This document shows positions 15,378-27,098 of a DNA stretch of 36,052 bases, piece after piece. Under the pieces are notes generated by a model. That model made no database searches, was not told where the DNA came from, and saw nothing but the letters and a program-made list of their open reading frames with translations. The position numbers and the translations under genes were made by a program. Each line of letters opens with the position of its first letter. The stretch's first letter is position 1. Source of the stretch: Klebsormidium nitens (Eukaryota; Plantae; Klebsormidiophyceae); assembly GCA_000708835.1 (NCBI GenBank), contig DF237705.1, positions 1 through 36,052 of the forward strand, written 5' to 3'.

Positions 15378-15660
15378 GCCACGTGGCACCATCGGACGGC
15401 TAGAAATGTAGTTCGAGTCACCTTCGCCCACAAATGAAGCAATCAAGCAGCGAGCAATTGGTCAGCGTTTTGCCCCCTCATCTTTCAGCGGACCAATCCG
15501 GGGCGCCCCCCAATTCAGGGGCAGGACCTCTGTCCAGGGGTGCTCTACGGAGCTCCTCGAAGAACATTTTCACAACCAAAACCCACCTAAATCTAACCCC
15601 TTTCCCCAGAATCCACGACACACAACCCGTCAGAGTTCTCGCCATCGTCAACCACCACCG
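15378..15660 (+). repeat. Copy A (degenerate) of the promoter + structured-core + G-poor-tail unit; candidate ncRNA gene or pseudogene
   Basis: GCCACGTGGC 15378-15387, ACCATCGGACGG 15388-15399, GCCCACA 15426-15432, core TTCAGCGGACCAATCCGGGGCGCCCCCC...GGAGCTCCTCGAAGAAC 15484-15565, then a C/A-rich tail. Homology to copies B-D is visible directly; the ncRNA role is inference. Confidence 0.85.
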
Positions 15661-16379
15661 AAATCAATCCTGGCCACATACAATTGCGTCAAATTTGAAA
15701 TTGACATGATTCTCGTTGCATGACTTGAATGACGCATCGAAACCCCAAACAAATCTCATGTTCTGTGATTTATAAACGGATGGTGCTTGCAACCAAGAAG
15801 GTGGTGCCTGACAAGTCTGTATCTGCGAAACCTGATGATGGGGCTCGTCTAAGCGCCATCTGTCGGAGGGCTTGTTTTTTTTCAAGGTTGACGTTTGCCG
15901 TGAACACGCCCGATATGCACGTGCTACTCAGCAATCAACCAAGGCTTTGCAAGAGAAGTCGCGGCTGCTAGCAGTGACTCTGAGAGATTGTGTTCTCAGA
16001 CCGATACGTCTTTAACTTGGTCGTGACATCGCTCCGAACCAGAAACTTGCGTTGGCTGAACACTGAAAGCAGATTTGATCAGACACGTACATGGACAGTG
16101 ACAAACCGACAGGTTCGGAGGTGACCTGCTAGCATGCAGACGTTTAATTCTCAAATTTCGAGTTCTAAGTTGTCGCGCTGCTCAGTAACGAGTTCAGCGA
16201 AGGTGGCATCGACATGAGCAGGAGCAAGGCGCAAATGTGAACAAACCGACATGCTATGCGATCACGCTGCTTGTCCATAACATGGCTTACATTCGGGACG
16301 AGTAGAGTAGATGAGTTGAGTGAAGATTCAAGTGCTGGTGGTTGCATATCTGAGGGGGTTCGGTTGTTGTGGTAGCAAT

Positions 16380-16682
16380 TGATGTGGCTGCGGTTGAGTG
16401 AAAAGGGGAGCGAATGATGAAACTTGATGCGGTGGGTATTGTAATGATGTGGTGGTGTTTGAGTGAGGAGGGGAGTGACGGAATAGTTTGGGATGGGTTT
16501 GTTCCGGGGGAGCTCCGTGGAGCACCCCTGGACAGAGGTCCTGCCCCTGGGCCGGGGGGCGCCCCGGATCGATCCACTGAATGACAATGAGCAGAACGCT
16601 GACCTATGTATGCACTGCGTTTCCACCTTCTCTGTGGGCGGACCTGAGATTGTTGCGACCCGTCCGATGGTACCACGTGGCA
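16380..16682 (-). repeat. Copy B of the promoter + structured-core + G-poor-tail unit; candidate ncRNA gene
   Basis: On the minus strand: G-box 16673-16680 with adjacent CCGTCCGATGG, GCCCACA 16633-16639, CATACATA 16606-16613, core 16581-16501 (TTCAGTGGATCGATCCGGGGCGCCCCCCGGCCCAGGGGCAGGACCTCTGTCCAGGGGTGCTCCACGGAGCTCCCCCGGAAC), then a G-poor tail with T4 at 16404-16401. Confidence 0.9.
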
Positions 16683-17718
16683 CATCGAATGGCATCGGTG
16701 CAAAACCGCGCTACCGCGGCCGACGGCAGCGTGCCCAGAAAAGGCACGAGTCGACTGCGACCGCTTGGCTACTGGGAAACGGGCAATACGAATGGCAGAG
16801 CCGGAAGCATTCTCCAATAGCCAGAATCGGAGCCAATAAGGAGCCTTGTCAGGCTGCGTCTTTACGTCAAGCTGGCACGATACTTTGCCAAACATGAATC
16901 TGGAAGGCCGTCTTCTCAGGCGTTGTCCTAAAATTGCGGTGGCAACTTGACGAACAGAGAGTTGCAGGTATATCACGCGGCTCACATGTACTGCTCAGTG
17001 GCCACGAAGAGCAAAGATCTGGGCTGTACTGCGCACTACCGGCTCGCGTGAGAAACTATCCTGAGCACAGTGATTCGAGTGAGGCGAGTGACCCTCTTGA
17101 GCAGCTCTCACAGTGAGTGACTCTCATGATCAGTGAGCGGCTCTCGTAACTTGGTATATTCCAGGTTCCAAACGCACACTGTCACACTAGAACAAGCTTA
17201 TCAGATCGAACAAGCAAGTGAGCTTTGTTCGGAGCTTGTTTTATCCGCCAAACGCTGGAACTCCTGCTATGCAAGATCATATGAGACATGGGCAATCTCG
17301 CGTGGGCACGCACGACTCGCATCTTTTCACGCCAAGTGGAACCGAGGATAGTACTGGACAGGAGCTTCCTCAAAAAGATGCCGTTCCTTATGCCCTTTGA
17401 TCGGACGTTAGAAATGATGGGTCCTTACGAAATTGCCTCCCAGCAAGTCAGTCGAGATGTGTACTCTACTAACATGACCGCCACGAGAGGCTCAATCAAG
17501 TTGCAGCAATCCCGGATCCGCTTGTCCGCGCAGTTTGACAGGAAGCTCCGGCGAAAAGATGAATCTGAGAGCAAGGAACAGCTTCTCGATCTGCTTCGAT
17601 TTTCGCGTCCTGCATCTAAAGCGTGGGCATCACTTTCCCTGCTTTGGACAGCTTGCCTCCAGCGCGAAGCGGAGGATGTGCCGCAGAGCGCGTCAGGTTT
17701 CGCGTAGTTGTGTCATCA

Positions 17719-18128
17719 CCGTCCGATGAAAGCCACGTGGCCAAATCGAGCGGTAGAAAGTTTCCGTTCGTTGTGAGTCGGCCCACAGAAAAGGGAGACA
17801 AACAGGGTGTATATAAGGGAGTGTCCTGCCCTCGTGGTTCAGTGGATCGATCCGGGGCGCCCCCCGGTCCAGGTTCAGGACCTCTGTCCAGGGGTGCTCC
17901 ACGGAGCTCCCCCGGAACAGCTCTTCACACAACTTCCTCCTCAAAACAACCCTTACATATCAAACAGATTCCGACAACAAACACAAATCTTCCAAACCTC
18001 TCCTATAATCAATTACAACAAACACACATGTCCCAAACTAAGTTCTCATGCCGCAATCCCAACGTCAGACACTCACTTGACATCCTATGACTGAATATGC
18101 TCATACTTCTTGAAGAGCCGCATGTTTT
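17719..18128 (+). repeat. Copy C of the promoter + structured-core + G-poor-tail unit; best candidate for an intact ncRNA gene
   Basis: CCGTCCGATG 17719-17728, GCCACGTGGC 17732-17741, GCCCACA 17781-17787, TATATAAG 17810-17817, core 17838-17918 nearly identical to copy B, G-poor tail, first TTTT at 18125-18128. Confidence 0.9.
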
Positions 18129-18405
18129 CATTCAATTCTACGTCCGGCTAAACAAACATGCGTGGCGAACCGTCAGTAGGAGACGAATATCAAAAAAATC
18201 ATTTGCTGCCTTTGGCTCATGCATGGGCTTTCGTTGAAAAGTGCCAGAATGTGCATGCTCTCGCGAAATTGAACGTGGAACAACCGTTTCCAGCACCTGA
18301 ATGACATGATACTTTGCGTCATCGTGCTTGACCTGTGAGGGTCGTGAACATTCGTCAAGCGTGCTAACCAAGTAAGCAGTGCGCGTTTATCCGGCGTGAG
18401 TTCTG

Positions 18406-18790
18406 AAAAAAACCGCCCCCCGTGGTTGCCACAGACGAGGACTGGCTGTGTCAAATCAGAAGCGGACCCTCTGGCTGGAAAGTCCTCGTCAAGGATGCTG
18501 GTTTGCGGTTGGTTAGGTTGGGTTTGTTCAGAATAATGGGTCATGTAATTTGTTATTGGTCGGAGGTGGTAGCGGATGAGGGAGTGGTATTGAGGGCGGT
18601 GATGGGTTGTTCCGGGGGAGCTCCGTAGAGTGCCCCTGGACCGGGGGGCGCCCCGGATCGATCCACTGGAAAATCCAAGGGCAGGCGCTGAGTTATGTAT
18701 GCACTGCTCGTCTGAGGGTTTTGTGGGCAGAGTCAATAAATCCAGGACTTTTCGAGCCGTCCGATGGTGCCACGTGGCATCCGTCGGACT
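18406..18790 (-). repeat. Copy D of the unit; core lacks the middle hairpin; candidate ncRNA gene
   Basis: On the minus strand: G-box 18769-18778 flanked by CCGTCCGATGG and CCGTCGGAC, GCCCACA 18722-18728, CATACATA 18694-18701, shortened core 18671-18609, G-poor tail, T7 at 18412-18406. Confidence 0.88.
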
Positions 18791-20057
18791 ACTGTGGTCA
18801 CGAAGACGCCGAGCACGAGACTGACGGTGGCTTTAACAGCCCGTCCAAGTTGCGAGATAGGAGGAAGGAAGGGAGCTCAAGTGGAAGATAGATGATCGTG
18901 TGACCATCTGCGGCCTTTCTGCACCGTTTCTCCTGCCAGCGCATGTCAGTCTTCCACCTTAGGAGCAGGACTGCCGTCATCCAACAGATCTTTAGAGTAT
19001 GGAATAGACGAGCACAAAGACCAGTTCTGATCGGTCTTCTTGTCAAAGCGCTGGATACCGAGTCCCGTGTTTAAGACAAAGGCATACTAAAACACATACC
19101 GTATTCAGTGTTGCCAGACCCGATCCTGGATGAAGGAGATGACCACGTGCAAGCGTGGAGTGAAGATTTCTCAAGCTCTAGTGGCAGCAGCCATCCTCAC
19201 GGCAGCGCTCCCGCGGTCCGCTCAGCTGGTTTTGAGAGAGCTTCTCAGGATTGTCCGAGTCTGCCCCCAAACAGGGGGTGCCACCGGACAAAACGCTGGC
19301 TCATCGTTTGAGTCCGAGTACGTGAACCTTATATAAGAAGTGATCTCGGTGGAGGATGTCGCCACGTGTCACACGAGCTTTCGTTTACTCAACAGCTCGA
19401 TTGCATTATACGTGCGTACAATCACGGCCAGGCTGGCCGGAGGTCCCGGTGGCCAGAGTTCTAGCAGAGGCATCTCCTGAAGCTACCTATGCTCTGGAGA
19501 TAACAGTCGAGTATTATAGAAGACTCGTGCTTAAAGATACATCTACCCATATGTGCTGGTCGAAAGCTCTTCATATATGTATGCCATTGAACTTATACAA
19601 TCAGCCGCGGCCTGCATTTTCCTCTTCAGTGCGCGCACCGCTCGAGATGCTGCATGTTGCGTTGCACCAACTCTCACTTACAAGCTATAAGCATCTAACT
19701 TATGATCCGGCGTGACTACGTTAAATGACTGTTCTCCATTATGGAACGACAATTATATAGTCGACTTTGCAAACTGCAATGGACTTAGAATGTTCTCAGA
19801 ATGTTCTCAACAATCTGCACAACAACCATAGCAGCTTCTATCTACAGACGCAATCACTCCTATCACGAGTGCTTTCCCAATATCACAAGCAAATACAATA
19901 GACCTCGTCACAAGCCGCTTTCTTACTTTTTAACGAGGATATTTATGCACCGCCTTTACACGTCGTAGCAAAGAAGCAATCGAACGGATTGGAAGTTAGG
20001 GCGGGCACCTCAACCATCTACAGTGTACATAGATTTAAGACGTCAACCAGACACGAG

Positions 20058-24474: not shown

Positions 24475-25013
24475 TTTTACGCCCCTCGTCGCGCAAGATA
24501 TAATCCACTTGTCAAGGCTTACGGAAGGGAAGCCTCGGACCAGCTAGCTATGCATCGTTAGCGCTTGCGGCCTATCAGCGCCAAACGACACACTGAAAGT
24601 TGACGCCTCAATTTAGCTTCTTGCATGCATCACTGGAGCCGCTCTCCCAAAACATTGTCGTCTTGAGAAACTACGGTATCTTTAATATGAGTACCTAGAG
24701 CGTCCTCTAGCTCTGGCCCTTTCTCACAGGCGTTACATTCTGTACTGCCATCTAACGTCTGAGTATGAGCATGCGCATGAGCATATTGTTGACGAGGTAG
24801 ATGCCGCACCTCGGTCACACAACAAGTTGGAAGCAACGAAGAAGCCCCTGGGCAAAATGAGAAACAGCAGGGTCGGAGGAGGGACGGAAGATGCAAATGC
24901 TCGAGCCAGACGCTGAGCTGCAACATTTGCGGGATCCCCCCTTCGGAATCGTACCTCGGCATGCTGTATACAGTATACCTTTAGGTAGACTCTAGAGTTC
25001 GTCTAGCCTCATG

Positions 25014-25419
25014 ATAGGGTATTCGCACCTAACATTTTCCGATCTGTTCTTTTCTCGCGGGTTTCTTGCGAGTTCTCGTCGAATCTGTCCATTTCGGCCG
25101 CAAGAAAATTGACAGGGCAACTTTTTCTTGTGGCGGCTTTTCTTGCCGGTTCTTGTGCGACGCATAGCTTATGCCATCCACCCGCGTATGGTCGACTTCG
25201 GATACCATCGAAGCCGTCCGATTGCCTTTTGTTGCTTAGATCAAAGCCATTTCCAGCCGTCAGATCATAGCTGTTGGGCCGGGCAGAAAAGACTTGAGCA
25301 GAGTACAGCCCGGTGCGAATAACCGGTCTTTTCTTGACTGTTCTGGCTGTTTTCACAAGAAAAGCGGCAAGAAAAGATCCACAAGAAAAGTTGAAATCCT
25401 TTAGGTGCGAATACCCTAT
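25014..25419. mobile_element. MITE 1 (~400 bp non-autonomous TIR DNA transposon, probable TA target duplication)
   Basis: Perfect 22-bp inverted repeat ATGATAGGGTATTCGCACCTAA at 25011-25032 and 25401-25422. Read as element GGGTATT...AATACCC it is flanked by TA on both sides. The interior has many AAGAAAA/TTTTCTT subterminal repeats and no credible ORF. The superfamily is uncertain. Confidence 0.8.
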
Positions 25420-25702
25420 CATCAGACACAGGAGTCAGGCCCTATAGCCCGCGCGCGCAGCAACCCTGCGGGGATCCCCTAAAATTCTGGCACCAAACCT
25501 CTACAAGCGTCAAATGTCGCGTTGCCTGTGCCGTTGAATGGCGTGAGCATGACTTTGAACGGCTGCGATGGCCTCTTGAATATTTGGCCAACTTGTGCTG
25601 ACATCAGCAGATCTTCAACTTGAGCTAAAGGCTCCGCGGCTTCCACGTCGGTCACTGGAAGCCACAACCCCTTGCAATGGCATTGGTTCGGAGCACATGA
25701 AT

Positions 25703-26194
25703 GGCTGCCTCCACACTGGGGGATACTTGGGGATACTGGAGTACCCGGCTACTTCTCAAGTTTCTCCGAGGAACCGGGAGCTCTTCCGCAGAATGCGGGA
25801 GCTGAAGTAGCCGCTTCCACACCGGGGGCTACTTCGGACATCGGCTACTTCCGCCGGTCGCTGTCAGCGTGCCACGTTGACACAAAGATTCGCGCAATCA
25901 TTCAAGAAAGCAGACTGTCGGTGTTCGCACGCGTCCGGTTCAACAACTGGACCGTTATGCTGAAATCTGATTGGCCAACCGCCGAGTAGCCGGCCGAGTA
26001 GCCTACTTTTTGAAGGATACTTGCCGGGCTACTCGTTTACACGTGAGAAGGCGAAGTAGCTTCCGATCATCGCGGAACACAAAGTAGCCGGGCTGAGTAT
26101 CCCGCAGTCTGGACGGGCTACTTGCCCGGGATACTCCAGAGGGGGGTACTCGGAGTAGCCGACGACCCAAGTATCCGGCAGTGTGGAGGCAGCC
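25703..26194. mobile_element. MITE 2, PIF/Harbinger-like (~490 bp), 3-bp TSD AAT
   Basis: TIR GGCTGCCTCCACACTG(GG/CC)GGATACTTGG at 25703 and ending 26194. AAT is directly repeated at 25700-25702 and 26195-26197. The interior has numerous GGCTACT/AGTAGCC repeats. A GGC-initial TIR with a 3-bp TSD is typical of Harbinger elements. Confidence 0.85.
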
Positions 26195-26313
26195 AATCAT
26201 GTGCTCCGAATGTGTGTTTCAAGTTTGAAGCGACGAAGGGCTTTTCCCACAGCCAGGATCGGTTTTGTCAACTGTTCGGAGGTTTGGTCACGGTCTTCCA
26301 AGTTCCATGCTAA

Positions 26314-26751
26314 GAGTAGACTTACATCGGCACGGTTAAACGGTTAAATGGTTACTTTTTCCAACGGCACGGTTGAACAGAGATTGGCGCGAAAGCGCTC
26401 CGCCGGTCATCGGCTGCAGCCCCTTGGAAGAAGCAAATCTGCAAATCTTGGATGAGGCAGTACTGTACCATGTAGAATTTGGGTACTGATAGTGTACCGA
26501 GCAGACTTCCGCACCGTCCGATCAATTCGTTCCCCCCACGCGGCGGGCCCAGATGGAGTAACGGTGTGCTGTTGGCCCCAACCCGCCTAGGCGGGTTGGG
26601 GCCAACCGTACAGTTGGAAGATTATCGTGGGGGGTTGCGAAGAATCCACCCAGGTGATGCGTGAAGTAACCGTGCGTAAAAGTAACCGTGCCAATGTGCG
26701 GTCCGGTTGCGATTAACTTCTAACAGTAACCGTGCCGATGTAAGTCTACCC
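26314..26751. mobile_element. MITE 3, PIF/Harbinger (Tourist-like, ~440 bp), TSD TAA
   Basis: TIR G(A/G)GTAGACTTACATCGGCACGGTT at 26314 and ending 26751, with TAA at 26311-26313 and 26752-26754. CACGGTT/AACCGTG subterminal repeats occur near both ends. Confidence 0.9.
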
Positions 26752-27098
26752 TAAGCGGTTGTTCCGCCAAGTCTTTTTCACACCGTGCCACAAGATCAAA
26801 ACCAGGCGCTCAGACGGACTTCATACATCTGTTCAAGGTGATTCCGTGCTGAATTTCTGCTTGGAGGTGGTAGTTTTCCTGGTTTGTGACAGAGCTGTCG
26901 TACGCGGGCTGCTTACGGAAGGAAGTTTCGATCAGCAAGTTTATCGCAGACTCCTGCTTCTTATAGTGGTCATTGCATTAAGATAGTCTCTTTTTTAGTG
27001 TCTGGCCGGGCAAAGACTAACCAAGTAAGTAGTTCTGTTGCAAGCTAGGAGTTGTTGTTGTGCGGATCTGCTAGCCTGGTGCGCCCGTTCCTGCCAGC

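Follow-up and report, generated by a model that had tools for sequence, protein, structure and literature searches.

A probable multigene family of non-coding RNA genes with a fixed upstream promoter, a constant head and a G-poor tail in Klebsormidium

The gap between a kinase gene and the IST1 gene (KFL_007560040) on scaffold DF237705 of the alga Klebsormidium nitens, whose full 36,052 bp form the window analysed here, harbours four copies of a three-part unit that consists of a promoter region, a conserved 'head' and a G-poor 'tail'. The gap runs from the RNA end of the kinase (~14682) to that of IST1 (~19379), holds zero called genes and carries the units as two convergent pairs, A(+)–B(-) and C(+)–D(-), recovered with the positions and strands that an earlier note had assigned from the sequence. 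A third convergent pair, E(+)–F(-), lies at another locus. The unit is a real, selected, multi-copy non-coding element of undescribed build, and the copies are very probably non-coding RNA genes that form a multigene family in Klebsormidium. This reading is well supported because the promoter geometry is fixed in six copies, the heads are conserved far beyond the spacers, copies are present in relatives and transposon-type ends are absent. Promoter geometry, head conservation, composition and length of the tail, the multi-copy state and the presence in relatives all rest on data.

Positions within a unit are counted from the A of a YCAG motif, the predicted start. Six of six copies display a G-box composite, CCACGTGG-N4-ATCGRRCGG, at -102 to -111, the heptamer GCCCACA at -60 to -62, a TATA-like box at -31 to -33 (decayed in A) and the YCAG start. 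The heptamer, which resembles the CCCA-core upstream sequence elements (USEs) of other lineages (Table 1 of PMC8287931), is placed 29 nucleotides (nt) from the TATA box, start to start, in all six copies, and spacer identity is 32–63%. Within the window the G-box is associated with GCCCACA four times, against 0.00 expected, and GCCCACA with TAYATA three times, against 0.01 expected; the conserved upstream motifs described in the earlier note thus pair far above chance, and to them is added the fixed composite, which it had missed. Plant type-3 genes, which encode small nuclear RNAs (snRNAs), U3, the signal recognition particle RNA and telomerase RNA, likewise have a CCCA-core element at a constant distance from a TATA box, the gap between the two, in the Arabidopsis convention, being 23–24 in the RNA polymerase (Pol) III class and 32–34 in the Pol II class (PMC8287931). 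The corresponding gap here is ~17–19 bp by our own count, closer to the Pol III class but equal to neither, and the RNA of the units gives no match to any of these plant families. Judged by sequence, the promoter appears to be external and snRNA type-3-like, made of the G-box composite, a CCCA-core USE and a TATA box at fixed spacing; no B box is found in the units. Runs of T behind the heads are scattered across the copies (T4 at +3, +97, +207 and +282, T7 at +197, T5 at +119), with no T5 run within 600 nt in B, C and F. These missing T5 runs, together with an RNA contig that crosses the T7 run of D, would pull the polymerase assignment towards Pol II. Unit A, in which the TATA box is absent and the 3' stem broken, is possibly a decayed copy. 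A 3' splice site at YCAG, also considered, is weakly contradicted by the geometry of the promoter upstream and by one paralog that has CAA there.

The heads are 77–80 nt long, except for that of D (58 nt), which bears a 19-nt deletion, and share 79–97% pairwise identity. Mean identity is 89% in the head versus 49% in the spacer, and the heads of B and C are 96% identical (3 differences over 80 nt), in agreement with the earlier statement that the core is far better conserved than the DNA between the upstream motifs. The core length of ~80 nt given there holds for A, B and C (77 nt each) but not for D, and its proposed end, GAAC, has to be corrected: in all paralogs conservation stops at GGAA, one base past the last hairpin. 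The ACA triplet that follows the head in A–D is missing from E and F and from the paralogs of sequencing runs X6–X8. A shared reading frame is excluded because the deletion in D and a 1-nt shift in A break the frame within the head, consistent with the absence of a conserved open reading frame (ORF) noticed earlier. RNAalifold applied to six copies predicts three serial hairpins after a leader of 10–11 nt, a form to which energy minimisation of single sequences also leads for B, D, E and F. Six pairs change on one side with pairing kept by wobble, and the last loop takes four forms (CACG, UACG, UUCG, AAUG) above a CUC/GAG stem that does not change; runs of GGGG and CCCC in the heads permit several folds. 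The substitution pattern, the loop variation and the loss in D of the middle hairpin, with the other two kept, lend modest support to selection acting on an RNA. A cloverleaf, favoured when four copies were used, lost to the three hairpins once E and F were added, its first arm being broken in C, E and F. A loose descriptor of the hepatitis delta virus-like ribozyme matched in registers that differ between copies and lean on variable tail bases, with no shared double pseudoknot.

Behind the head, pooled G content over the six copies is 2–7% in each of six 20-nt bins (~120 nt, 5% on average) and 16–30% thereafter. The tails of B, C and D are the only 100-nt segments with 6 G or fewer in the 36 kb, both strands considered. 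Unrelated G-poor tails had been described in the earlier note, whereas their defined length of ~120 nt had gone unnoticed. Paralogous tails do not align (lowest P value 0.045 among 15 pairs). Tail starts of apparent orthologs align and stay G-poor, as seen for an RNA contig labelled K. nitens against the F tail and for a contig of run X8 against the C tail (30-letter pieces). Because the tail starts of orthologs align while tails of paralogs do not, each tail is inherited with its locus, and the main constraint on it is compositional. Compared with mononucleotide shuffles, UCA(A/U) is enriched in the tails (27 versus 10.7 expected), as is CAA, and CCCC is depleted (7 versus 17 expected). The tails are unfolded in predictions, and pairing between tail and head is avoided no more than by the tails' own shuffles.

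A mechanism in which the head binds a protein and the tail offers a landing strip for others is plausible, at a little under even chance. The external snRNA-type promoter would drive each gene, with transcription starting at the A of YCAG, and the RNA would comprise the single-stranded leader, three hairpins, of which the middle one is dispensable, ending in GGAA, and a tail of ~120 nt that would be unable to fold because it contains almost no G. The constant head would bind a common protein, serving stability, localisation or particle assembly, and the tail would expose a single strand to C/A-binding proteins by virtue of its composition and its short UCA/CAA words. The RNAs would then act as scaffolds or decoys that recruit or sequester proteins, and not as base-pairing guides. 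Inferred in this scheme are the point where transcription starts, the polymerase, the length and fold of the RNA, its binding to protein and its role. Its main rival, which we regard as unlikely, holds that the mature RNA is the head alone (~78 nt) and that the G-free stretch is a precursor zone for termination, cleavage or 3' trimming to the last hairpin. The sharp end of conservation just after that hairpin fits this view, as do the rarity of tail-containing RNA contigs (depth 2–5), expected of precursors, and the fact that a 78-nt RNA would drop out of these libraries; yet neither a plant 3' box nor a shared T run is found behind the head, and the stretch has a defined length, a word bias and, between orthologs, alignable starts.

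The earlier note had compared the architecture to that of guide or decoy RNAs while seeing no effector, and none was found. The guide half of that comparison has to be weakened, since a stretch of ~120 nt with 5% G that is inherited per locus better suits a protein-binding or processing zone. As a guide or template system, the head would bind an enzyme and the tail would pair with a G/U-rich or G/T-rich target or template G/T-rich DNA, in the manner of telomerase or Fanzor RNA. Such a eukaryotic system, with tens of separately promoted RNAs that share one enzyme-binding head and each carry their own long G-free base-pairing strand, is improbable. The constant 5' scaffold with its locus-specific 3' part would suit it, an active Fanzor is present in K. 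nitens (PMC10530073), and tail F matches the CCCTAAA repeat over 10 nt. However, the five other tails contain no telomere-like stretch above chance, the Klebsormidium telomere repeat is reported as CCCTAAAA/CCTAAAA, tails of 120 nt without G are unlike short free flanks, and no effector gene, transposon end or TA junction lies at these loci. The RNA of the K. nitens Fanzor KnFNuc resembles the units, by description, in its constant 5' scaffold and variable 3' part (PMC10530073), but the KnFNuc fRNA arises from non-coding sequence at the 3' end of the transposon that carries the nuclease (PMC10530073), whereas each unit has its own promoter and a 120-nt tail of fixed composition and adjoins neither a nuclease gene nor an element end.

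No run recorded as RNA holds the stretch, and four runs of one study that were guessed to be RNA contain 7–12% of its words. Contigs from two of these runs cover the C tail (17933–18149, depth 2.5) and the D tail (18335–18585, depth 3.2, across the T7 run); one joins a paralogous head to 255 nt or more of tail, and another, which begins ~20 nt before the predicted start, extends 563 nt behind a diverged head. A spliced minus-strand RNA of 353 nt in run X5 (depth 4.7, GT/AG junctions) consists of exons 17050–16986, 16387–16289 and 15419–15231. It begins 470 nt upstream of B, bypasses the B promoter and head, takes the B tail as its second exon and ends antisense to the A promoter. As the contigs reveal neither strand nor RNA ends, they fall short of demonstrating transcription from these promoters; data of this kind should contain few RNAs that are short or non-polyadenylated (PMC8287931). 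The family of independently transcribed RNAs proposed earlier stands as a multigene family whose independent transcription is putative, given the depth of 2–5 and the overlapping read-through RNA.

The same contigs bear on a further alternative, to which we give a slight probability, whereby Pol II promoters produce longer RNAs, non-coding or with short ORFs, that are capped and in part spliced; the head would be their conserved 5' element, and the tail would serve as a G-free leader of the omega kind. The G-box, the TATA box at -32 and the TCAGT-like start suit Pol II too, one paralogous contig reaches 563 nt beyond its head, the D contig crosses T7 and the B tail ends in a used splice donor. 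Against this, the first ATG occurs at +57 to +154 and opens unrelated ORFs, scanning would be impeded by three GC-rich hairpins next to the cap, and a CCCA element at fixed distance is not known from ordinary mRNA promoters.

Several observations weigh against a family of RNA genes of the proposed build. No 3' end signal is common to the copies, which share neither a terminator nor a plant 3' box. The depth of the RNA contigs is 2–5, twelve further runs with the same species label contain next to none of the words, and read-through may explain the tail contigs, given the spliced RNA that crosses B from upstream. The enrichment of tail words rests on mononucleotide shuffles, uncorrected for genome-wide dinucleotide bias. 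In the head, zero pairs are changed on both sides, seven cells of the alignment break pairs (four of them in A), and the folding energy is no better than that of shuffles (z -0.15 to -1.11); for the 'structured' core described in the earlier note, the support comes from the substitution pattern and not from energy.

Further copies were found in relatives; the earlier note had suggested looking in related algae. Of the proteins returned by a HMMER search with the heads translated in frame, P0005 is a true homolog and two others are unrelated repeat proteins. P0005 is a spurious ORF reading through head E on L007, a Logan contig (5,705 bp, run SRR23617307) that represents a locus different from the window, the likeness being limited to the units. 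E and F score 92 and 82 bits against a model built from A–D, and their promoters are complete, with the composite at -111, the USE at -61/-62 and the TATA box at -32/-33. In run X7, recorded as DNA and labelled as another organism, a single contig of 2,405 bp has the A–B pair in unchanged order, and no fewer than six contigs each link a head to a different G-poor tail. Head depth there is many times flank depth, which is no measure of copy number; as a rough inference, this relative may contain tens of copies. Run X8 shows the same pattern. A word-index search with the head-spanning ORF gave zero matches, and searches with IST1 found no second Klebsormidium genome giving syntenic DNA. Of two patterns run on the JGI metagenomes, the first had no match and the second five chance bacterial matches, both being patterns that would miss E and F, so that these negatives carry little weight; scans of viral contigs, GTDB genomes and plasmids were blank at the sensitivity used. 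The literature, searched with exact head words among others, yielded no description of these RNA genes.

The copies also allow DNA elements to be considered, either as inverted transposon ends (A–B, C–D, E–F) or as palindromic protein-binding sites, a reading of very slight probability. All three loci are convergent pairs, 693–939 nt apart, and the head contains three palindromes of 8–10 nt (P ~0.01, for a statistic chosen post hoc). However, conservation peaks at the inner end and is lowest at the outer one, with no target duplication, so that the terminal inverted repeats (TIRs) of a transposon, named in the earlier note as a check, are an unlikely reading of the units. B and C, which belong to different pairs, are more alike than pair partners; A, E and F each have a broken palindrome 1, and in the A copy of a relative palindrome 2 is disrupted; a relative keeps the A–B pair in the same order, and the true miniature inverted-repeat transposable elements (MITEs) of the window look different.

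The assertion that the core resembles no known RNA agrees with database comparison: Rfam 15 gives no gathering-score match in the window or in two sub-regions of it (best 26 bits against a threshold of 102, elsewhere in the window; heads at most 22.4 against 80) and none near threshold on L007, and ARAGORN detects no tRNA in the window. Individual classes were rejected in turn. For H/ACA small nucleolar RNAs (snoRNAs), the ACA box is lacking in E, in F and in the X6–X8 paralogs; for C/D snoRNAs, no box C (RUGAUGA) occurs in the head plus 250 nt. An Sm-like word is present only in E and no splice donor is shared after the heads, which argues against Sm snRNAs and spliced-leader RNAs. A tRNA or tRNA-derived short interspersed element is contradicted by the blank ARAGORN result, the missing B box and the broken first cloverleaf arm. 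Telomerase RNA fails in that a 9–10-nt repeat match occurs only in F, other copies being at chance level; Fanzor/TnpB omega RNA at a transposon end, in that the scaffold stretch has no nuclease gene and no target duplication; and MITE TIRs, in that the gradient is reversed and no duplication is seen. BC1/BC200 and snaR combine a structured 5' domain with an unstructured A- and C-rich protein-binding region, snaR being a recent multi-copy family, and derive from tRNA, 7SL or retroelements with internal Pol III boxes. Sequence comparison with them was through Rfam, and the units contain no B box. The Class I RNAs of Dictyostelium are closest in gene organisation: they form a lineage-restricted orphan multigene family with an upstream element ~60 nt before the start, a constant motif, a variable region and a proposed protein-binding role (PMC7919456). 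Class I RNAs are 42–65 nt long and consist of a stem closing the 5' and 3' ends, an 11-nt motif and an internal variable part (PMC7919456), unlike the units with their constant 5' head of 78 nt and variable, G-free 3' stretch of 120 nt. Membership in that class was rejected, the variable part lying 3' of the constant part here and Rfam giving no match.

Table. Parts of the units in the window (DF237705) and location of the third pair; positions relative to the predicted start are given as 'at -n'.
Feature	Position	Strand	Remarks
Unit A upstream composite element, G-box CCACGTGG-N4-ATCGRRCGG	15379..15399	+	at -108
Unit A USE-like GCCCACA	15426..15432	+	at -61; TATA position 15455-15460 decayed (CAATTG)
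Unit A head, 77 nt	15487..15563	+	most diverged, 79-85% to other heads; T4 directly after
Unit A G-poor tail	15564..15685	+	10 G per 120 nt
Unit B upstream composite element	16660..16680	-	at -102
Unit B USE-like GCCCACA and TATA-like TACATA	16605..16639	-	GCCCACA 16639-16633 (-61); TACATA 16610-16605 (-32)
Unit B head, 77 nt	16502..16578	-	three hairpins predicted, last loop cCACGg
Unit B G-poor tail	16300..16501	-	6 G in first 120 nt; G-poor over ~200 nt
Unit C upstream composite element	17733..17753	+	at -108
Unit C USE-like GCCCACA and TATATA	17781..17815	+	GCCCACA 17781-17787 (-60); TATATA 17810-17815 (-31)
Unit C head, 77 nt	17841..17917	+	
Unit C G-poor tail	17918..18037	+	4 G per 120 nt
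Unit D upstream composite element	18757..18777	-	at -110
Unit D USE-like GCCCACA and TACATA	18694..18728	-	GCCCACA 18728-18722 (-61); TACATA 18699-18694 (-32)
Unit D head, 58 nt	18610..18667	-	19-nt middle hairpin missing; hairpins 1 and 3 kept, loop cUACGg
Unit D G-poor tail	18490..18609	-	8 G per 120 nt; T7 at +197
Units E and F, third convergent pair	L007:3674-4968	E+, F-	downstream of intron-rich MFS transporter gene

Other parts of the gap carry features of their own. Between the divergent B and C promoters, short clusters of imperfect inverted repeats lie at 17066–17150 and 17190–17245, and the region 16991–17402 is conserved in relatives. Between the C and D tails, a block at 18327–18416, which adjoins the T7 run of D and has no folding signal, retains a likeness of 85% or more in diverged contigs of orthologous loci, where the tails do not. 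A 32-nt piece at 16783–16814, probably a short repeat, also occurs in abundant transcripts from elsewhere (contig depths 80–200 in X5 and X6). Just beyond the 3' end of IST1, a G-box-like word and TATATAA stand at 19361–19320 on the minus strand, with neither GCCCACA nor a head, and one relative lacks 52 nt at 19246–19299. Elsewhere in the window, three inverted-repeat-bounded elements are adjacent within 1.8 kb: 25008–25425 and 25687–26210 (repeats of 25 and 45 nt) and 26309–26756, which has 30-nt inverted ends flanked on both sides by TAA, contains a strong internal hairpin (26550–26625) and is by appearance a PIF/Harbinger-type MITE. The gene-free, G-skewed segment 33000–36052 holds what appear by eye to be decayed remains of a copia-type retrotransposon integrase and a gag zinc knuckle.

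If the RNAs are confirmed, the units would constitute a sizeable small-RNA gene family outside all catalogues, in an alga that belongs to the streptophytes, the lineage from which land plants arose. For their build, a constant folded head followed by a 120-nt G-free strand, no match was found among described classes. The sharply defined snRNA-type promoter, with its unusual spacing and G-box composite, could serve small-RNA expression in Klebsormidium, and the protein that partners the head offers itself as a pulldown target.

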